Shown here in pieces: positions 1,515-30,680 of a stretch of 33,000 bases of DNA. This DNA is from Dicyema japonicum (lineage: Eukaryota; Animalia; Dicyemida), in the NCBI GenBank assembly GCA_011109175.1, contig RDEW01000003.1, forward strand, positions 372,001 through 405,000, written 5' to 3'. Numbering within the stretch: the stretch's first letter is position 1; the number at the start of each line of letters is the position of its first letter. The notes under the pieces were generated by a model, which was given only the letters and a program-made list of their open reading frames with translations, was not told the DNA's origin and searched no databases. The position numbers and the translations under genes were made by a program.

Positions 1515-1742
1515 AAGGTTTTCTTTCCCATTCAATTATCGTGGCTTCGCGTGGTCCGTCCGTATCGCCAAGTCCCAGATAGCATCGAAAAGGATCATTA
1601 ACTCTCCCCAACTATTGGAGAGGTTCCCACATCTGTTGTTCTGGATAGACTTCTGTAGATGGAAGAACCGTGACAGTGGGAGCCGCGTACACTTAATAGA
1701 TGTAAGTACTTCTTTCTCGGTTGATGTATACGTTGGTTAAAA
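1515..1742 (+). mobile_element. Pseudoknot-SINE (family 2), diverged copy
   Basis: GTGGCTTC..TGGTCC...CGAAAAGGATCATT..CTCCCC...GGAGAGGTTCCCACA core, plus a TACACTTAAT...CTTCTTTCTCGG...GGTTAA tail matching the 11228 and 17797 copies. Confidence 0.6.
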
Positions 1743-1879: not shown

Positions 1880-2130
1880 TGTAAAAACAAGCTAACTAAT
1901 TCCTTGATCCTGATGAGCCTTCACCCAAGAACAGTGATTCAGAGGACCTTGTCCGGAGAGCTGAGGTCGATTCTAGAACTCGTCGCAAGGAAACGTAATT
2001 TTCTTTCAGTGGAATGTATAATTGAAACCCTTTAATGCCGACCAGGCATTGGGCGTCTCATTAGTAAGGTGGATCTAATGACGCCATCACAGGGAAAGAA
2101 AATAAATTTTTAACCAACTATCCACATAGC
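1880..2130 (-). mobile_element. Pseudoknot-SINE (family 2), diverged inverted copy
   Basis: The minus strand reads GTGGATAGTTGGTTAAA (A-box-like)...GGCGTC ATT AGATCC ACC TTACTAA TGA GACGCC CA ATGCC TGGTC GGCAT TAAA GGGTTT (2085-2025), then TCCACTGAAAG. Outer boundaries are approximate. Confidence 0.65.
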
Positions 2131-2288
2131 ACCACATGGCGCCACTCGGTCATGACAATTTTTGTTAAAAATTACAACAGTAGAACACTAAGTAAAACGA
2201 TAAAAATCTATTTAAAAATTCTGATAAATTAGTTGTATTTTAAAATCAATAAAAATTTAAATTATAATCTTTTGTGAGCTTTAATCAT

Positions 2289-2732: not shown

Positions 2733-2825
2733 ATATTATATTTAACTTTATTAAGAATATAAAACTTTATTACATTAAGAAACAAGAGGTCATACAGTAC
2801 CCACCCTGGAATACCACATGATGCT

Positions 2826-2975
2826 TTGTGACTAATTGGTTGAAGATTTCAGTTGCCTAGTCTGTTCCTTCTCTAGGCGTCATGTTATCCACCTATCTCA
2901 TGTGGTGCCATACTGGAACGAAAAAGGATCATTTGCTCTCCCCTACTCCACTGAAGGGGTTTCACAACAGTAGCC
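2826..2975 (+). mobile_element. Pseudoknot-SINE (family 2), 3'-truncated copy
   Basis: GTGACTAATTGGTTGAAGATTTCAG head followed by GGCGTCATGTTATCCACC...CGAAAAAGGATCATTTGCTCTCCCCTACTCCACTGAAGGGGTTT. Confidence 0.8.
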
Positions 2976-3112: not shown

Positions 3113-3559
3113 GAAGTAATTTTATAAATCGTTTATTTCGTTGGTTATGGTTGAGCAAAACGAATTTTAAGACTAACAGATCACCGTTTACTACCAAAAT
3201 ATTAAACTCCGAAACACATTGAGTGAGTAAACAACTAATTAATTCCGCATATTCTGGGTCATCAGATAAAATAGGTGTCGTACCACGTGCATTATCTCCC
3301 GGTTAAACCATTATTCTCGATAGTCAGTGTGGATTTAGTGGAGATAGTGACTTTGGTTGGTCCATCAGAATTTGAAGATAGTGCTAGTGAATTGAGGAAA
3401 AAACATGAACTACCACTCATAAGGAGACTTCTAAAGTCGACATTCTGGAGGTGAACGGGACAAAATTGAAAAAGGTTAGTTGTCCTATACTGGAGGTGGA
3501 AATTATACGTAAGATGATCCAATTTTGTGTAGGGGAACGTATATTTTCCATTGTGACTG

Positions 3560-4300
3560 TCTCCGAACCAGGAATAGTGCGTTATGAGACATTGAAGCAA
3601 AACCATTCCTTAGGAAATGGTGGTGATTGTGAAACCGGACGCCATAGAAAATTGAGTGGCTGTTTCACCAGACAACTGCTAGAAGAATCCTATGGAACTG
3701 GCGATATCATAAACCCAAGAGATCTTAGAAAAGAGACCGTCTTGAGGGTGAAGACAGCTTTCTCGACAATAACGGGCTCTACATGGAAGCTGGTGGAGAG
3801 GCTGTCGTATTTTCTTACTTTGGAATTTTCGAATAATCGTGCAGCCTCCCCAGCATTCAACGCAAAATCAAAAAGTCTTGACTGAGAAAGGGTGTATGTA
3901 CATGCCCCATCTCAAATCAGGCATTTCCCTAGAGAAAGGGAAGACAGTTATTCCGTCCGGGCGTTTTCCATCTCCACGGCCCACCAGTTCAGAGAATTCA
4001 GTCGCCTGAAGAGAACGCATTCAATATATTTATGGGGAGCTTTCCTCACATTGATGACACGTGGTGCTATTTGGCTATTTGATTCAAAATTTCTCTTTCT
4101 TCCTTGTATTGGCGTCATCGGATACAGCTATCTTAGAAGACGCCCAATACCTATCCGACATTCAAAAAGATCCGTCACTTCATTCAACAGACTATTTCGC
4201 TCTCTGGGGACGAGTTCTGACTACGATCTCAACTTTTCGTACAATGTCCTCTGGATCACTGTGCCTGGTACACGCCAGTGTCAGGGGATTAGTTAGTTTG
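3560..4300 (-). mobile_element. CRE-like non-LTR retrotransposon remnant (restriction-like endonuclease region)
   Basis: The minus strand gives GRGDGKRPDGITVFPFS, then (frameshifted) ALNAGEAARLFENSKVRKYDSL..FHVEPVIVE..FLRSLG. Homologous to the 30850 and 32545 copies. Confidence 0.8.
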
Positions 4301-4429
4301 GTCTTACCGTTGGTCTTTGGTATAATTTGATTTTATGAACTCCACCACATGGATTATTTATTAACCCCGGATAATATTATTATTGGACCACAAGGATATT
4401 ATTGATTATGAAAGTTGATTCTAAGATTC

Positions 4430-5117
4430 AGAGAAGAGAGCGCCGTCTTTGGTTTACTGCTAAATATCAAGAAGACCAAAATTATGACGACTGCTAATAA
4501 GGAACTAAAAATTAGGAATGAGAAAATAGAGAGTTAATGTTGTCTTTCTGGGATGTCTAATTAATCGGAATGGTGACGGAGGCTTGGAAATCAAGAGGCG
4601 AATTGCCATGGGACGAGACACCTTCCAGAAAATGAATAGAATTTGGAAAAGCAAAGATATTTGCTTAAGGACCAAATGCAGACTGGTTAATGCAATCGTG
4701 TTCCCGGTTTTTCTATACGGCACAGAATCATGGATACTGAAAAAGGCGGATAGACGCTTTTGAACTGTGGTGCTGGAGGAGATTACTAAGAATCCCTTGG
4801 ACTTCCAAAATAACAAACACCAATGTACTCAAACGGGTGGAGACGGACATTTCGCTAGAAGGAAGAATCGTAAAACACAGATTGGCGTTCTTTGGGCATG
4901 TTGTCCGCTCTGATTCCCTGGAAAGAACCATTATGCTGAGCAATATTACTGGGAAGAGAAGACCTGGTCGACCGAGGACTCGGTGGCTATCCACGGTGAA
5001 GACCTCATGGGAATGCCTATATCAAGGCTACTCCAAATTGCAACGGATCGGGGAGAGTGGAGGAAACTCGTTCATGAGATCTCCAAGGGTCAGACACGAC
5101 TTAATTGGACAACAAAT
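4430..5117 (+). mobile_element. RTE-clade (BovB-like) LINE, 5'-truncated 3' part
   Basis: EIKRRIAMG..F, TKCRLVNAIVFPVFLYGTESW, FELWCWRRLLRIPW, FFGHVVR and GKRRPGRPRTRW. RTE-type terminus GACACGACTTAA. Confidence 0.9.
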
Positions 5118-5279
5118 ATGAAAATTAATTTTTTTTAATAAAAATAAAAATTTATCGAAAATGAAAATTATAAAATATTGGAGACAATTTTTGTTTCCAC
5201 TGAAATGCAATAAAAATAAAAATTATATGTTTTTAAATAAATATAGAACTTTGCATTTCTTACACTTGTGACATTTGGT

Positions 5280-6030
5280 GCCCACCCATTTCCTGGACAA
5301 ACGCCGAAGTGATCATGTTCCAGGAACAGGCATACATAGTGAAAAAGCATTGGTCCACTATGAAGAAACAACTCCCATCAAACTCTCTCGAATCCTTAAT
5401 TCGTCTAATCGAGCAGGATGTCCGTTTCGCCATGATCGTAGAATTTTCCGTCCATCGCCGGCTTGTGAGGGCTCAAGGGAGGAACACGTAACCATATTGA
5501 GGCCTCTGCTGTGACATGTTCCTAAAAGTGGTCCTTTGGAATAAATTCATTCCTACTTCAACATGAAGGACGTCTAAGAAAAAATGAGTAACCAACCGGG
5601 GGGGTTCTTTTTCAAAACTGACTGACCTTCTATAGAGAAGATCGTCTGGATCTTGAGACAAGCGCAAGTAATCCAAAGTTCACTTCTTAGCGTCAATAAT
5701 TTAAATCAAGCGTTTATGCGGTCGTTGAGCTCATTTTTATGCAATTTTTCAGGCAATTAGCGTTCGATCGCAAATAAGCAGGTTAAGGTCATAAGGAATG
5801 CAATCATCATCGAGTACCATAGTTGTATTTATCCGCAGATTTTACATCACTTGATGCCTGCCACTCGGGTTTGAGTGCAATATTTTATTAGAAATCAAAA
5901 TCTTTCCGATCGTAAAAATTTTAATTCTTCCTTTACTTCTGACCGTCGTTCTCGTCACGTACTCTTTATAGATTGAACAAGAATAGTATTTCGATGCCTT
6001 AGTTGTTAGGCAATCGATTCTCAACCACCC
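5280..6030 (-). mobile_element. Probable Mutator-like (MULE) transposase remnant with a FLYWCH-like finger
   Basis: YYSCSIYK....KGRIK....ILHSNP resembles FLYWCH. The downstream FDGSCFFIVDQCFFTMY resembles the MULE motif DGTF..VP..F.QLY. Many stops. Confidence 0.35.
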
Positions 6031-6167
6031 ATAGCTGGATGATGTCGAAAATAGTCCCGTTTACTAACATAAGCATGAAAATCTTCAAATAATTGACGGA
6101 TATTTTGTTGAAATAAATTTTTTGGTCACTTTATTACTAAGACGGCACTGTGAGACAAAACGATTTT

Positions 6168-6415
6168 TGTGATCTACCTGTCAAAGGAGACGCCCAGTGC
6201 CTGACCAGCATACAAAACTCTTGTGATCTACCTGCAAGGGAGACGCCCAGTGCCTGACCGCCATACAAACAGATCCCGCTCTTCTTTACTCACTTGAGAG
6301 GTTCCCACAAATGGGATATGGATGGATGTGATGCATTTAACTCTGACTGCGAACTGAGATCACTTGGTTAGTTGAGGACTCTCTTTTTGTTTAACTCGGT
6401 GATCTTTAAACGATA
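6168..6415 (+). mobile_element. Pseudoknot-SINE (family 2), diverged copy with an internal ~55-nt tandem duplication
   Basis: TGTGATCTACCTG..GGAGACGCCCAGTGCCTGACC..CATACAAA occurs twice in tandem, then AGATCCCGCTCTT..GAGAGGTTCCCACA and a decayed tail. Confidence 0.7.
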
Positions 6416-6595
6416 AATGATTAGGACGATCCTCTTTCCTTCAAACTGAAATTCTCCATGCTTACTGGTTTAATAAAAAGGACTGGTTTCAGTGAGGTTT
6501 CAGATAGTCTCGTGAAAAAGTACATACATTTAAGGAATTGGTCATTTATGATACAAAGACTGTCTGTCTTAGTCATTTATGCTACGAACTCCTTT

Positions 6596-8115: not shown

Positions 8116-10288
8116 CTAAATCATTTTTTTCTTATCCTCACGCAAAGTGACAGTAAGATTGAATATAATCTACTTTTATTAACATCTCACCCTATGGGGG
8201 AGGACCAGAATCGTAGTCAACAGCAAAATATCCAACACGCTCGAATTGAAATCTATCCCCAATCTTCACGTCGGAAATGGAAGCGTCAATTAATGCAGTC
8301 TTTTCTACCAACGAATTCTACAATCTACAAACCCTTACTACCTTGTCGACATCACTCATAAAACCCTCAGGCACCTGTCTTTTATCCTCAGGTAATTTGT
8401 GCTTAAACCTACCAATAATTAGTAAAATTACAATTTCGAGTACATCCTTACTGTGCAAGTGACAGGTTGAGCCACCCAGTGAATGTACGAAGCACATTTT
8501 GATGAGTCAACTGGCGAGAACTCGACAGTAATCTCATCATCGGTATATTCGACCACGTGGATCATCATACTCGTGTACTTCAGACCAACCCATGAGGTTT
8601 TTGTCAAACGCTTAAATCCTTTCTCACCATCCTCGAAATTAAACAATAAATTACACAGGCAGAAAGTCGCTTCGCTCAATATACACCACAGAAGAAAAGG
8701 TGATAAAATGACTTCCTTTTGAATGATCGGCGGGAAAATCTGGCACTTCCAGTGTTGTTTGTGGGCTGTGTTCTTCCCAGTTGATAATATTCACTTTAAT
8801 GGGATCTACGACAGACATAGTTCTACAATAAGTAAGAAATCCACCGTTTGGAAGTATTATTGAGGATATTCCTTGTACAAGAATCGAGAAGAATCGGATC
8901 TGTGTAACAAAAAGTCATTGTGACCCCGACCTTATTGCAGAAATAGTTAACAGCCTCAGGGGGAATTCCTCTTCTTCTTAAAGCGGACAGGGTAAACAAC
9001 CGAGGATCATCCCAACCACTGCAATAACCTCAAGACATACCTAACGAGTCCATTGTCAATCAACTTCCCAATTTTACGTTTGGAGACAACTGCATAGTAC
9101 AGATTTAGTCTCCCATACTCCCACTGCACTGGACAATAGACGTCCACCGCATTGCACAAAAAATAATACGACGATCTGCGAGATTGGAATTCCTTAGTAC
9201 ATAGAGAATGGGTGATGTCCTCAATAGAGTCGCAGAGACAGTGGGTGAAGTCATAAGTGGGATAAATACACCTGCAATGATTAAGCAAGCCGACCAGTCA
9301 TTCATGGTGCGATAATGGTGAGCGAATTTAATCCTGTAAGCCACAGGGTCCATCTTTCCGTCCTCCATAATGTGTTTCATTCTCAATGTAGCCTCCCCCT
9401 CGGGTATTTTCCCTGCTCTCATATCCTCAAAAAGGGACAGAGACTCTTCGATAGGTCGGTCCCTCCAAGGAGAGACTTCCGGGTTAATTCCTTTAAGCTG
9501 ATCGGCAGTCTGGTGGCATACGTAAGCAAGGTTTTCCTTGATCAACTTCACAGCCATGTCATAGAGCTCCCCAAAGTAGTCCGAGGCGTAGGTTATATCG
9601 TAAGGCTCATAACCCAGCCAGCGAATATCCTCCTGGATCCCAAGGAAAAACTTTTCCTCCTCTTTTTCTGGGTTCGTGTCATCATAGCGAAGAAATGTGA
9701 TCCCTCCGTGGGTCTTGGCGTACCCAAAGTTGAAATTGATGGCCTTCGCGTGTCCAATGTGGAGGATACCATTGGGTTCTGGAGGAAACCGAGTCCTAAC
9801 CATTCCTCCAGTTCGTCGCAAATGTTCGGCCATGTGCCACATAGTGTTCTTCACAATAACGTACCCGTCAGTCTTGTAGTTCTCCCCTGGAAGGTGGAAC
9901 TTTGCGCACTCTCCCTCCTCTCAGACTCTCAATATCATTGGGGTCTCCACTTTCGGTTCCCCTCTCAGGACGGATTCGAATTCAGCGACGTTGACGTCTT
10001 CAGCAGTATTATTAGTGAAATAGTCAATTACAGCCAGTAGTTGCTTGTCATTAGTTATTTGGGAGTTCCCAATATATTGTGTAATGAACTTTGCACGCGG
10101 CCAGAACTGTGATTTCAACTTGGTTGAGAGTAGATAAAGTAGTTTTCCTTTTGAAGAGTCTATGGTACAGGAATTCAGTTCCTCTATGAGTTCTCCTAGT
10201 CTGGATTGGAGTCTTTTGTTTTTAGAGTCTCTTTTGCTTTGTTTTCAGTAAGCCCAATAGACACAAGAGTACCAACGTCGAGTTCCAT
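8116..10288 (-). pseudogene. QARS1: Glutaminyl-tRNA synthetase, disrupted copy (probable pseudogene)
   Basis: Motifs [71 protein letters not shown] and FNLTVTLRED. Seven introns: 9272-9294, 9019-9040, 8823-8844, 8632-8656, 8409-8431, 8318-8341, 8170-8190. Lesions: a 1-nt deletion at ~10220, loss of ~100 codons at ~9970, an indel with in-frame TGA at ~9910-9923, and an indel with TAG at ~8192-8200. Confidence 0.85.
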
Positions 10289-11227
10289 GGCTTTGAATGT
10301 GATTCAATTTCAGAATTTATTTAAATTCAAGATTTTTAATTTAATTTTTATTTAATGAATTAATTTGTAAAAAACTAAATTATTAGTAAATTAGTATTAA
10401 AACTAACTAAATAATTGTTTAAAGCAAGTTGGTGATAAATGATACTCAATTTAAAAAATTAAGTAACTAATTTTAAGTTTGTTTGCTTTGACTGATTTTT
10501 ATGTAGTCGAGTGAATTCTTAATTCCGACTGTTCTATCATACATTGTAATCTGGATTATTGTCGGACAATTGATTAAGTCAGTGTGAATTCTCGATTTGT
10601 CAGACTGTGGTGAATTTTTACGTCAGCTGTGTACGGCTTAGATTGAGATTATAGCTAGAATTTACATATTTGTCAAACTTAAATTTCCATTTTAGACAAT
10701 AAGAGGATTTAAAAGACTTTCAATTAGATAATTTCATGGTTTAAAACTGAATTAATAGTCTAAATTCAGTGAGATAGGCTTTACTGCTTTATAAAATTAT
10801 GGGTCAGAGAGGGGAATTCGAAGTTACGGAGCGATGGACTTACGGAAAAACTGGGTAACCAACGGGAAGACTCAGTTACGTCGACATGATGTCACACAGA
10901 CAATCAATAGACCACGTGTGGTGGATTTTTAATTTGTTCGATTAAATATTTTGGCACTGAAAATGCCAGATTTGTTAATTTCGTATTTTCGGCAGATAAA
11001 TTCAACGATTGAGACCGTACCGTTTTTTTGATTTGATGGCCTGCAGAATTCTATTTTCCTTAGTCAATAAATCACTTTTTAAAGCAAATTCGTGAAAAAT
11101 GGAAGAGTATTTGTTCAGTTTAATTTGAAACTGATACCAACCTTTTCTTGCTTCGTTTCCAGGCTTTATCCGATAATCTAAAGGACTTAGCGTACATTCT
11201 TATCTATGAGTACTTATTCTGTAAGTC

Positions 11228-11482
11228 TGTTCCTCCTCTTTCTTCCTAATAGAGTGGCGTCATGTGATCCACCTGTCTAGGTGACGCCCAGTGCCAAGCC
11301 GGCATGAAAAAGGATCATTTGCTCTTCCCCACTCCACTGGAGGGGTTTCCACAACTGCATGTAATGGACGTCTTACCCTTTATGCTGATTCCGGATGGAC
11401 TCTGTTTCTGTAGAAGAACTTACTTAATTAGTTGGTTACTTTAACTTCTTTCTCGGTGTATCCGGGTTAATAAAAAATAATA
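11228..11482 (+). mobile_element. Pseudoknot-SINE (family 2), young 5'-truncated copy with a perfect 22-bp TSD
   Basis: ATGAGTACTTATTCTGTAAGTC at 11206-11227 and 11483-11504. (TAA)n/A-rich tail. Highly similar to 17797-18110. Confidence 0.93.
11256..11317 (+). ncRNA. Candidate HDV-like pseudoknot RNA domain within the SINE
   Basis: P1 GGCGTC/GACGCC, J1/2 ATG, P2 TGATCC/GGATCA, P3 ACC/GGT, L3 TGTCTA, P4 GTGCC/GGCAT. The helix order is that of HDV-family ribozymes, but L3, P1.1 and J4/2 are atypical. Confidence 0.45.
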
Positions 11483-11599
11483 ATGAGTACTTATTCTGTA
11501 AGTCCTATATCACTTAATTCGAGATAGAGAGGGTTCATTGGGAGCCTTGAATAAGTTGGCTGAGTTTAGTATCCCCAGATTATATATCCTTTTCTTTAC

Positions 11600-17226: not shown

Positions 17227-17796
17227 CTCTATTGGTTAGTGGCCTGGTGGTTGAGTTGGTAGTGTAGCTGTGCTGTAATATTCCTATGGTGAACTTAATG
17301 TCCTTATCTCTTCAATATGGGTTTGACCATCTTTTTTTCTTTTTAGAAATATTGGAGCGCCAATCTCCCGAACGCCATATGATATTGGATGACCTTGGAT
17401 AGGAACAAGGGAAGTAAATAGATAATCCTCCAAGAACAACAATAACAGGTTCCATCTAGATTCAGAGATTTCATTCAATTGTCAATTTCTTGTTTATTTA
17501 GAACCCTGAGATCTTCTAAAAAGAAAGACATAAATAACTTCAAACGCTCCTTTTCAACATTGATGGATTTTTGTAATGATTCCGTATTCCCAGAGTCTTG
17601 CGAGCTCTTCCACACCTGTAATTTCGAAAATTTTGTGACGAATCCATTCCGTACATGGATTATTATCTTTCAAAAGTTTTAAAATAAACCTTGTAAAAAA
17701 ACTTTAACGACACAACAAGCAATTTCGCGGTTTATAAAATTAATTTAAAATTATTTAATTATTTTTTCTACTAAAATATTAATTATTTCTCAGTTT

Positions 17797-18110
17797 CTAA
17801 CGTGGTTAATTGGTTGAAGTTTTCAGCTTGTTTTGTTTGTTCCTTCTATTTCCCTTTTTATTAGAGTGGCATCATGTGATCCACCTGTCTAGGTGGCGCC
17901 TAGTGCGACAGGCCGGAACGAAAAAGGATCATTTGCTCTTTCCCACTCCACTGGAGGGGTTTATACAACTGCAAGTATGGACGTCTTTTTCTTTTTATGT
18001 TGATTCCGGATGTACTCTGTTTCTGTAGAAGTGGAAACTGGATACACTTAACTAGTTGTTTAATTTAACTTCCCTCTCGGTGTATCCGGGGTTAATAAAT
18101 AAATTAATTA
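17797..18110 (+). mobile_element. Pseudoknot-SINE (family 2), longest and probably full-length copy
   Basis: TSD AATTA(T/A)TTCTCAGTTT at 17781-17796 and 18111-18126. A-box-like GTGGTTAATTGG. Pseudoknot core at 17868-17931. Tail TCCGGGGTTAATAAATAA. Confidence 0.9.
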
Positions 18111-18194
18111 AATTAATTCTCAGTTTAGTGATTTTCTTTGTCATTGGTAACATTACTCTGTTGTGAGATTCCACCCACTGGCGATTTGACTAAG

Positions 18195-18370
18195 ATTTCT
18201 CTTCTGTTCTTAGCCATTATGTAATCAACCTTCTCAGCTTGTTCCTAGCGCCTGGGTGACATGAATAAGATCATTTGCTTTCTCTTATTTCGCTGCCTTC
18301 ATTAAAAGGCGCGTGTACAGCAATTGGGGCTCTTTTTGCATTTCTGCTGATCCAGGATGCCTGGACAATG
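18195..18370 (+). mobile_element. Pseudoknot-SINE (family 2), old decayed copy
   Basis: GCCATTATGTAATCAACCT...CATGAATAAGATCATTTGCT...GCTGATCCAGGATG aligns loosely to the family core. Confidence 0.5.
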
Positions 18371-18599
18371 TCTTTAACGCCATGGTATTGCCTGTTACTT
18401 ATGTATGGTACAATCCTTGTATTTCAGCGAGGAAAGCGTAAGTGCATGGAATCTGCAAGCCGTGACATTAAGACCACAAAAGTTCTCAGCTGAGATAAGC
18501 TAGAAAAGGCATTAGTCACATAGAGCCCGATACTCTTCTCTGAATTCCCAGAATAGCATTTGTACCGCATTTATAAGTTTAAATTTTGGACTTCTTCTA

Positions 18600-19292: not shown

Positions 19293-21254
19293 ATGAGTAA
19301 AGATCTTTCAAATGAAACTGGTAATTAAATAAGTGATTTTAAGAAATAAATATTAACCGTTTCGTCACTGCTCGAGCTGACGAGCTCTCATTTTTCTTAT
19401 CTCAGTGTAAGGCAAAGTCAAAAACCCCAATGCAGTTTCTTCCTAAACATCTCCGTCGTCGAGCGGCCAGTAGTAACCCTCGAAGGCTCCCACCTGGTTT
19501 CAGAAATCCTTCTTGTACTACCAAGAATCCCAAAAAGAACAAAAAAGTGAGAAAATCAAGGGCCATGGAATATGATAAACGATCCAAGAGATGCACGTCA
19601 GCTTTAAAATTTAAGTTGCAGGTGGCTGGAGACACACATTTGGCACGCAAAGAGATTTCACGTTGCTGACAAATGGGGCTGGCGGATCCCTCTGTTGCAC
19701 ACAGACAAGATTCTTCGTCCAAATTTTAAATCCGTACAGGAAAAGTGTGTTATACAGGACATTTCCTTCCACTCCGTCATAGAATTGGCAGGGAGCATCG
19801 ACGCCTTGATCTCTGGATTGGCCAAATTATGTAAAAAGGAATCTGGTTACCCATATTAATAACATCAGGACTTACATTCGCTGCAAAATGCTACCTGACG
19901 GGGGATATGACTGGGACTGTGTTCACCTACACGGTGGAAGGAATCCCGATTGGACCAGTGACTTTTATGTGGTCTCCCCAAATTGAAGAAACAAGGAAAA
20001 TATGGCTGATGTGTCATCCTTTGGTGACCCCACAACTTGAAGAGGCGATTCGATCAGTTTTTGGTATATTTCTCTCTTATTTGAGATACGAGCATCATAA
20101 TTGAGGATATTTCCAGGCAGATGAACAGATTCAGGTTGACTGGTCCCCTTTCACAGTCTATTTTGTGCTCCTTTTTTCAAATGGACATTGCCAAGAGATA
20201 TGGTGATTCTATCACGTCTCTTCTAAATTCCACCAACATCGTATCTCTAACTGTCGGGGACCCTCGTCGTAACTTGCCGAAATTGCGTCGCGAGATCCCC
20301 CCTTTGAATACCGATTCACAGAATAGTTTTATTCCTCAAATTCCCGTTTCTGGACTTTGGAATGCTGATTATCGAAAAAACGGAGTGCCTGAACGGAATA
20401 ACAGATTTTCTAACAATCACTCGGGCGATGAGGACTCTCAGATTGAAGTTATGCTGTTCAGGGATGTTGGCTACCAGAACTCTCCGGTTATTGACTCGTG
20501 GAGTGTATTGATACCGCGTGGATGGGGTGTCCCATTTTGGCTGAATTTTGTGTTTCGTGGAGCTCGTTCCGTTGCCACTCAGGAATGGCACTCAATCTGT
20601 GTGGATTTCTGCTGGATCAACGAGCTTCCGTCTATGTGGCCTGATACTGTGGCTACTTGCACATTTGAAAGTCAAAAAACTGAGGAATTGAGACAAAAAT
20701 ACAACAAGTAACCAAATTATCTTATTTATAGACGTCCTCCATCCAAGAGAGTCAATTATGCCAAAATTGGATTCACTGACGATCAATTCTCCTGCAATTT
20801 TGCACGCTTTTTTGAAGATACCTTTTCAGTTGTAAGAAATAGGAGCTACTTTATGAATTTATTCCCAAGTACCTCGACTAAATCTCATGTTCGTGTGAGT
20901 GCCAAACTGTTCTCTGAATTGAAGCTAGATTTTAAGAGCGAGACAACACTTACGTTGGTTAGAATGGAATGCGTTGGGAAAGGAAACGTGGAAAAATACT
21001 CACAAATTGCACTTCCTAGGATTGAGGACATTGAGAATGACTGCGTTGAGGGGGATGATAGATTTGTGATTGGAAGAGTGTCAGAAGGGATGTTTAGTAG
21101 AAGACTGGGACGGTCTATTGGTATTGGGTTTTGTGTGACTGGTTGTCTTGAGTCACTATGTCGTTCGATGAGCCCTCCTATTTTACTTATTCGTGCCCCC
21201 TCCAGTCAGGGTGTTTATAGAAAAGTATGGATAACACCACTTCTTGGTTGTTAA
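19293..21254 (+). CDS. POP1: RNase P/MRP protein subunit POP1, ~614 aa, 6 exons
   Basis: Introns 19321-19343, 19597-19621, 19846-19868, 20064-20085 and 20708-20731. The spliced frame is open and contains FVTARADE, LPKHLRRRAAS.NP.RLP, WLETHIWHAKRFH, QDISF, GPVTFMW, RFRLTGPLS, W..LIPRGWG.PFW, RPPSKRVNY and IGRV..G.FS...G...GIG. Confidence 0.95.
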
Positions 21255-27273: not shown

Positions 27274-28996
27274 ATGTCTTTTAACGGTATGTCGCTCACG
27301 AATTCTATGAAATCTAACCTTAAAAGTTCTTAAATTGTAACAAGCCATAGGGATGGGGATAAATGATCTCTTCACCGTTCAAAAGGAGGCATACAAGCCA
27401 ATATCTAGTGGAAGTGACATCGTGATTCACTCCAGTCTGCCTTATTTTTTCAAGTGTAGAGACTGGTAGCGGGAAGACACTGGCTTTTGGGATCCCTTTG
27501 ATGGAGCGTGTTGTTTCGGGTGATGGAGTTCAACTTCTGGCCTTGGCTCCTACTAGGGAGCTCGCAAGACAAATATCAGGACAGCTCGAACAACTCAGTC
27601 ATGCCAGAGTGATCCCTGTTTACGGGGGAGTCGGGATTCAAGACCAAGGTTAGATTCCTGGTAATCTTTAGTCTGGGACCTCAAGAAGGGAGTTGACGTT
27701 GTGGTTGGCACTCCTGGAAGGGTTATTGACCTGATTGGACGAAGAGCCCTTATTTTTACAAAATTGAGATTCTTGGTGGTGGATGAAGTTGACAAGATGA
27801 TGGATATGGGATTCAAAGATTCGGTCGAAGAGATAATCAACAAAGCCTTTTATTCGCCCTCCTCCAAACCACAATTGGTGTTACTTTCGGCCACAATGCC
27901 TGAATGGGTGTACTCTGTGACCAAAACATATATGAGGGACCACAAGTTAATAAAAACAGTGACCACAAACTCAAAGACCCCCTCTTCAGTTAGGCACGTG
28001 GCCGTCAATGTGGAATACTGGGGTCTTATTCCATCGTTAAATCACCTGGTGTTGGGTCTGTCGAGTGGGCGGGCCATAATTTTCGTGGACACTAAACAGA
28101 TGATTTCTGATATTGCTAATGACCCCGATTTGGAGTTTTCCGTAGATGTGCTCCACGGAGACATCGAACAGTCGCGGAGAGAACATGTCCTCAATGTTTT
28201 TGTTTAGCTAATGGCAGGCCTTTAGGGACGGACATGTGAAAGTGCTCCTTTGCACGGATGTGGCTTCTAGAGGAATAGACATACCCGACGTGGAGCTTGT
28301 CCTTCAGTGCAACCCTCCGCGTGACCCCGATAATTACATCCACCGATCAGGCCGCACAGGACGGGCTGGAAAAGAAGGACTCTCCATTTGCTTGTATAAT
28401 AATATGAACGGCTATGACGAACGATTGCTTACGCAAATCGAAAAGAAAGCTGTTTGTTATTCCTCATATTTTAGGGTTTTTTGTTCGATTCTGCCCCTTC
28501 CGTTTCGGACGCTGTTTTGGCTCAGATTAGAGAGTTTGGATGGCTGTAATCTGTAGGAAGGTCAAGTCTGTTGAGGCCAATGATGTCGAAAATTACATGG
28601 AAGCTGCCAGTATTATGCTATCTTCTGATGGTTCCCGGGACATGGTTGCTGCTATGATGTCTCTCTTGTTTGCTGAAAGATCTGGGAGAGAGGTTCTGTG
28701 AGTGATTGACATTTTAGGTTGCTAGCCTGAATGACACATTTAAGCAGGACTTTTCATTCAACAGAAATCAATACAGGAATGAGAATTTCTCTAGAGGTTC
28801 TGCGTATAGACGGGAAAACACTGGAAAGAGTTTGTCGTACAAGCAGAACTACTCCAATGACAGGAGGTTTTCCAATAGAAACGACTATGATGAAAGAAGA
28901 ATGTCTAACAAACAGGATTTCAGGCGATCTCGCGATGATTTCTTTAGTAAAGGCGGTAAAGATCTTAAATGGGAACGTGGATCAAAATTTTCTTAG
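27274..28996 (+). CDS. DDX21: DEAD-box RNA helicase, DDX21/DDX50 (nucleolar RNA helicase II) subfamily, ~518 aa, 8 exons
   Basis: Introns 27326-27350, 27435-27459, 27649-27671, 28196-28217, 28452-28474, 28534-28556 and 28693-28717. Motifs [70 protein letters not shown]...[12 protein letters not shown]. Confidence 0.9.
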
Positions 28997-30351: not shown

Positions 30352-30680
30352 TTTATTTTATTTATTAACCCCTGGATCATCGAGAAAGATGCCAACTAGT
30401 TAGGTGATTCCAGTTCCCGCAACCAAGCGTGCTATCCTAAGCCTGTGCGTCTCCACTGTTCCCACTGCTGAACGGAAGTTCTTTGATCTTTGCAGAAGAA
30501 ACCGATTGGCGACGGAAATTCTTTGCCAACCGATTTTCTTTTGCGTGAAACAGTGAGAGATTGAGTGGGTGTCCATCTTCCTCGCAAATGCGGAGAAATC
30601 CGGAACCACATCTATGAGTTGTAGAGTCCGTCAGCAGGGGAATCTGAGAGGGAATATCTACGCAGTTGGAGCGGCCTTTG
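30352..30680 (-). mobile_element. LINE 3' end (ORF2 C-terminus and 3' UTR), putative partner of SINE families 2 and 3
   Basis: The ORF ends ...RFLLQ....R...VAGTGIT*, followed by CTAGTTGGCATCTTTCTCGATGATCCAGGGGTTAATAAATAAAATAA. Confidence 0.6.

Follow-up and report, generated by a model that had tools for sequence, protein, structure and literature searches.

A conserved structured core with HDV-like helix order in a SINE family of Dicyema japonicum

The SINE superfamilies CORE, V, Deu, Ceph and Nin-DC are defined by a conserved central domain. Self-cleaving ribozymes of the HDV type, on the other hand, are found at the 5' ends of the R2, RTE and L1Tc/NARTc retrotransposons (PMC3774820, PMC3185411, PMC3383444), and in R2, RTE and L1Tc the ribozyme sets the RNA's 5' end (PMC3774820, PMC3185411). 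Non-autonomous elements with an HDV-like ribozyme at the 5' end have also been described, namely the R2-derived SIDEs (PMC3414825) and NARTc (PMC3383444). Finally, an internal structured region of the B2 SINE RNA was proposed to self-cleave (PMC13172522).

It is instructive to compare the core of a SINE family of Dicyema japonicum to these systems. At first sight the resemblance to HDV-like ribozymes is considerable, since the helices follow in the order P1-P2-P3-P3'-P1'-P4-P4'-P2' and P1 has 6 bp. As in HDV, J1/2 is AU(G), P2 abuts P3, P3' abuts P1', J1/4 has 2 nt, J4/2 is purine-rich, and in most relatives a C and then GAA precede P2'. Like the ribozymes of retrotransposons, the core lies in a retroelement, one with a probable RTE-like partner. 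In contrast to them it lies inside the element, 87 nt from the start, and none of the 100 copies listed begins at the expected cut site. It also departs from HDV-like ribozymes in having a G-C pair at the base of P1, no U...G pair in L3, no conserved P1.1, an L3 of 4-5 nt in the conserved register, a dispensable C and no match to a covariance model (CM). The SINE is a short, non-coding, LINE-dependent retroelement with an HDV-like fold as SIDEs and NARTc are, but there the ribozyme sets the 5' end of the element, which the core does not do here. The B2 RNA also has an internal structured region, which in our case is predicted from the sequences; the fold of B2 is not of the HDV type, and protein stimulates the cleavage (PMC13172522). 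Going by description, the likeness to the CORE, V, Deu, Ceph and Nin-DC superfamilies is that one internal block is common to SINE lineages with different 3' parts, and the difference is that the common block here includes the head and has helices supported by covariation. We think that the core is probably a structured SINE core domain whose fold serves a non-cleaving role of the SINE RNA.

The window analysed here is a stretch of 33,000 nucleotides (Table 1), and its positions 11228-11482 (+) are one copy of a SINE family with thousands of genomic copies. When the organism's own genome (67.5 Mb in 377 contigs) was searched, over 1820 candidates turned up, with an identity of 92-95% in the 40 scored matches, and a 20-mer of the core has 424 exact genomic copies as opposed to 0 for the reversed control. 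Within DNA contigs of one sample, the contig word depth goes up several-thousand-fold across the element, and an empty site was not found there. According to an alignment of 30 genomic copies with their flanks, the full SINE measures about 320 nt plus the tail. The preliminary description had rightly taken 11228-11482 for a SINE copy, but this is not the full element: it is 5'-truncated, lacking about 66 nt of the head, and it carries an internal deletion of about 10 nt near 11416. Most of the aligned copies reach about 66 nt further upstream, where their first letters are GCCGCGTGGCGCCATGTGG; the full-length start, about 66 nt upstream of the 5' end of the window copy, is GCCGCGTGGCGCC.

Target site duplications (TSDs) are variable and the 5' truncation points differ among the 30 aligned copies. 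Both TSDs reported earlier are exact, i.e. the 22-nt ATGAGTACTTATTCTGTAAGTC at 11206-11227 and 11483-11504, flanking the window copy, and the 10-nt TTCTCAGTTT at 17787-17796 and 18117-18126, flanking the copy at 17797-18116. All seven copies of the original list were recovered by profile or CM search. The element is short and non-coding, has a high copy number, variable TSDs and 5' truncation, and shares its 3' end with a partner LINE in addition to having a simple-repeat tail, which in the window copy is A/T-rich and of the (TAA)n type. The initial assignment to the non-autonomous retroelements is supported by the copy number, the TSDs, the 5' truncation and the LINE-related 3' end. Several diverged SINE lineages have the head and the core of about 75 nt in common, and their downstream parts differ. 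In 326 kb, 58 copies of the core were picked up with a profile and a covariance model, and about 28 of these fall outside the young subfamily.

Table 1. Positions of the SINE copies, and of the elements of the copy at 11228-11482, within the 33,000-nt window
Feature	Position	Strand	Remark
Left TSD ATGAGTACTTATTCTGTAAGTC	11206-11227		exact 22-nt repeat of 11483-11504
Right TSD	11483-11504		exact repeat of left TSD
5'-truncated SINE copy	11228-11482	+	alignment with 30 genomic copies
P1 5' strand GGCGTC, putative	11256-11261	+	conserved, no covariation
P1 3' strand GACGCC, putative	11283-11288	+	
P2 5' strand (G)TGATCC	11264-11270	+	compensatory changes
P2 3' strand GGATCA(T)	11312-11318	+	compensatory changes
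Small hairpin CCT-GTCT-AGG, conserved 'P3' register	11272-11281	+	
P3 as first drawn, ACC/GGT	11271-11273/11280-11282	+	
P4 hairpin GTGCC-AAGCC-GGCAT	11291-11305	+	compensatory changes
T11305, end of P4; most relatives have C here	11305	+	
Purine-rich joiner GAAAAA ('J4/2')	11306-11311	+	
LINE-related 3' region, then A/T-rich (TAA)n-type tail	11428-11482	+	
Older near-full-length copy with CGAA, TSD TTCTCAGTTT	17797-18116	+	
Lineage-B copy, core directly after head	2005-2149	-	
Lineage-B copy, absent from the earlier list	4053-4178	+	inverted repeat I1 with 2031-2138
Diverged copy	1522-1734	+	
Diverged copy, P1 3' strand deleted	2814-2971	+	
Diverged copy, core partly tandem-duplicated (6155-6234 and 6209-6285)	6164-6379	+	
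Diverged copy	18214-18372	+	
SINE tail fragment	30354-30424	-	

The probable partner of the SINE was found among randomly sampled genomic loci. Locus L040 contains a LINE copy (3503-6466, +) with the TSD AGAACCAAT and a single APE+RT ORF (L040:3495-6416, 974 aa) with the Pfam domains RVT_1 and Exo_endo_phos. This LINE is 5'-truncated close to the start of the ORF and has a very short 3' UTR that ends in (TAA)n; its architecture suggests that it is RTE-like. The last 70 nt or so of the SINE align to its 3' end with a score of 57 (shuffles: 21.9 +/- 4.2, 0 of 500 as high), hence the SINE is probably mobilised by this RTE-like LINE. TSDs of 10-22 bp, random 5' truncation, the LINE-related 3' end and the (TAA)n tail are signs that the LINE would mobilise the ~320-nt SINE by target-primed reverse transcription. 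A second LINE fragment, with an RT domain, an open frame of 663 aa and a (TAA)n end, is located at L045:2473-4461 (-), and a full-length SINE copy (L045:5362-5690) lies on the same strand about 900 nt upstream of it.

The complementarity of P1 to P4 is present in the SINE consensus, and the helices are indeed found where they had been drawn (P1 11256-11261/11283-11288, P2 11265-11270/11312-11317, P4 11291-11295/11301-11305). The drawn structure as a whole is paired well above slid controls, both in a MAFFT alignment and in a CM alignment. The copies decay neutrally, so only differences at the level of lineages are informative for covariation, and the covariation discussed below rests on only about 28 diverged, neutrally decaying copies and partly on a CM-fitted alignment; the CM alignment is biased towards P2, P3 and P4. 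A test of covariation against shuffles turned out well for two helices, as P2 and P4 both scored above every one of 500 shuffles, but P1 did no better than the shuffles (score 0.125 vs 0.135, a value reached by 385 of 500).

P2 shows double changes in three separate lineages and can be extended to 7 bp. Its form is TGGATCC/GGATCCA in lineage B, TGGTTC/GAACCA, reached via two transition pairs, in lineage C, and GATCT/AGATC in the copy at 6209. The closing pair of P4 (43-76) occurs as G-C, A-U and G.U, and changes from CG to UA or from GC to AU are seen in L030, L025 and L027. The variants of P2 and P4 that had been quoted are present in the copies named, including AGATCC/GGGTTT at 2076-2025, but the latter is one decayed copy of the lineage whose form is TGGATCC/GGATCCA. 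Since the pairing of P2 and P4 is kept via double substitutions in several lineages, we regard this part of the fold as real. An all-pairs covariation scan gave many apparent covariations, 43-76 among them, and is dominated by the split between lineages A and B, so that it is unusable as a covariation test.

The picture is different for the other two helices. The P1 strands GGCGTC/GACGCC are invariant in kind, i.e. conserved without covariation. Among the 100 copies listed, the sole common variant is an A to G change opposite U, and a compensating partner was not found for the variants GGTGTC and GGCATC. By our own estimate, a perfect GC-rich P1 of 6 bp would arise by chance with a frequency of about 0.004-0.01. 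P3 as drawn does not covary; the ACC/GGU complementarity exists (11271-11273/11280-11282), but what the lineages have in common is the register CCU/AGG (11272-11274/11279-11281) with a loop of 4-5 nt, whose pair 25-31 is paired in 90% of the rows, as compared to 61% for pair 22-34. The combinations P1+P3+P4 (-16.3 kcal/mol) and P2+P3+P4 (-15.0 kcal/mol) are predicted to be nearly isoenergetic, which makes a pseudoknot of P1 and P2 plausible. RNAalifold picks P1+P4 on the five lineage consensuses, and when given the raw MAFFT alignment of the decayed copies it returned no base pairs.

A conserved block of this kind could also be maintained at the DNA level, as an internal promoter or as protein-binding boxes, the pairing being incidental. 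The motif GTGGCGYCATGTGRT is present in both the head and the core of the SINE, and we take it to be loosely similar to an A box; moreover, P1 and the core of P3 never vary. Compensatory double changes such as those of P2 and P4 are, however, unexpected for promoter boxes. ARAGORN and Rfam gave no sign that the head derives from tRNA, 5S or 7SL (ARAGORN found no tRNA-like head in four full-length SINE copies), and between consensus positions 44 and 47 the head reads TTTT, which would be a weak pol III terminator. We hold conservation at the DNA level to be very unlikely.

The preliminary description went further and proposed that the element bears a ribozyme or is derived from one. A working ribozyme would be active in the C-bearing subfamilies, cut 5' of the P1 G and remove the head. 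The predicted topology is the same as in HDV, CGAA precedes P2' in most A-type copies (the three CGAA copies originally named are all there), and a P1 of 6 bp is within the range of R2 (PMC3774820). The details of the active site point in the other direction. L3 reads UGUCUA, without the 3' G, and offers neither the U...G reverse wobble nor P1.1; a Nasonia R2 ribozyme no longer cleaves once the conserved L3 G is lost (PMC3774820). Lineages B and C do not preserve the proposed P1.1 (UG/CA), and the conserved CCU/AGG register uses up bases of L3, leaving only 4-5 nt and thus no room for an L3/P1.1 of the HDV type. At the HDV cleavage site P1 is closed by a G.U wobble (G1.U37). At the corresponding pair of the SINE, 7-40, 35 rows have G-C and 4 have G.U.

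The 'catalytic C' is common but dispensable for amplification. In the window copy and its whole subfamily, which was amplified nonetheless and comprises at least 30 copies that are about 97% alike, the position is U. Among the 100 A-type copies listed, 76 have C and 24 have U at this position, the dinucleotides being CG (67), CA (8), CT (1), TG (22), TT (1) and TA (1). Lineage B has UC here, and most lineages keep a C at or beside the junction of P4 and J4/2. The position also co-varies with column 43 (G-C/A-U/G.U), as expected of a P4 base pair, a result that rests largely on the A-vs-B split.

The search with Infernal and Rfam that had been suggested gave no HDV-like match. There was none in the window at the gathering score, no relevant family at E<=10 on a full-length copy, two more copies and two LINE loci, and nothing above the cut-off genome-wide for RF00094 and RF01788. 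The Rfam covariance models cannot score pseudoknots, so that this negative result is weak evidence. A metagenome scan for the core returned 8 loci, all of them chance matches by CM.

The position of the core within the element also counts against a ribozyme. The P1 G is at SINE consensus position 88, so that the predicted cut is internal and would sever the conserved head from the SINE body, unlike the 5'-terminal cut of the ribozymes of retroelements. Reverse transcription of cut RNA would give many copies starting exactly at the P1 G. None of the 100 copies listed begins there; all 100 have the homologous TCCTA(A/T)TAGAGT right up to the P1 G, and of the 424 copies whose 20-mer is intact, 423 also satisfy a filter placed 12 nt upstream of it. 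Cleaved RNA therefore accounts for less than about 1-3% of the insertions, if any. With a P1 that does not covary, a missing L3/P1.1 and G.U, a C that was lost in an amplified subfamily and an internal cut site, the ribozyme claim is not supported, and judging from the sequences we consider an active ribozyme very unlikely. An HDV-like topology that comes without the active-site features and the 5'-terminal position does not identify a ribozyme. By analogy with B2, one might still imagine that the C-bearing subfamilies have a divergent HDV-type ribozyme inside the SINE, one whose closing pair is G-C, whose L3 is short and whose J4/2 is long, and that removal of the head is perhaps regulated or exploited by the host, and to this too we would give very little credence.

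Because its helix order and spacings mirror those of HDV, the core is possibly derived from a ribozyme. It would then have come from the 5' end of a LINE, e.g. of the RTE partner, acquired a new head and lost catalysis, its fold being retained for reasons of structure. It is in keeping with such a history that the partner LINE appears RTE-like, that the C is retained in 76 of the 100 A-type copies listed, and that non-autonomous elements derived from R2 and L1Tc carry such ribozymes (PMC3414825, PMC3383444). Yet searching the whole genome with the HDV-like models gave no match, and the LINE copies examined, which are all 5'-truncated, share nothing with the core. In addition, the 5' half of the core resembles the head motif GTGGCGCCATGTGGTGC, which suggests an internal origin; all in all, we find the relic unlikely. 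Within the core the head motif recurs as GTGGCGTCATGTGATCC (the two lie at consensus positions 5-21 and 85-101), an example being window 2149-2092 (-), which adjoins 2091-2012 (-), and the 5' half of the core may have arisen when the head was duplicated internally.

Returning to the structured core domain, we picture the ~75 nt as a folded RNA module conserved in several SINE lineages. P2 (7 bp) would close a junction that holds the small CCU/AGG hairpin and the P4 hairpin, and the GC-rich complement GGCGUC/GACGCC may add a pseudoknot. The fold probably has a role for the SINE RNA itself, such as in stability, RNP formation or template selection, and does not cut this RNA; the likeness to HDV would then be one of topology, whether by convergence or as a relic. 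Should the fold be purely structural, the family joins the other SINEs that have a conserved core; it helps to annotate the genome and presents a case in which some parts of such a core are under real RNA-level constraint. Were the core catalytic, or a relic that can be traced, SINE core domains would be tied to the ribozymes of LINE 5' ends, a connection that to our knowledge has not been described.

There are a few further points worth mentioning. Of the 100 copies listed from the genome-wide pattern matches, 67 retain the CpG at GGCACGAAA, meaning either that the copies are young or that CpG decay is slow in this genome. The window contains a 108-nt inverted repeat (2031-2138/4058-4165, 74% complementary, about 1.9 kb apart) that consists of two lineage-B SINE copies in opposite orientation. 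Two partial cores overlap at 6155-6285, which points to tandem duplication on a local scale within a single old copy. The SINE copies of the window sit between and around three genes, represented by exon(s) of a class I Glu/Gln-tRNA synthetase (9105-9854, -), of the RNase P/MRP subunit POP1 (20121-21254, +) and of a DEAD-box helicase (27701-28207, +).
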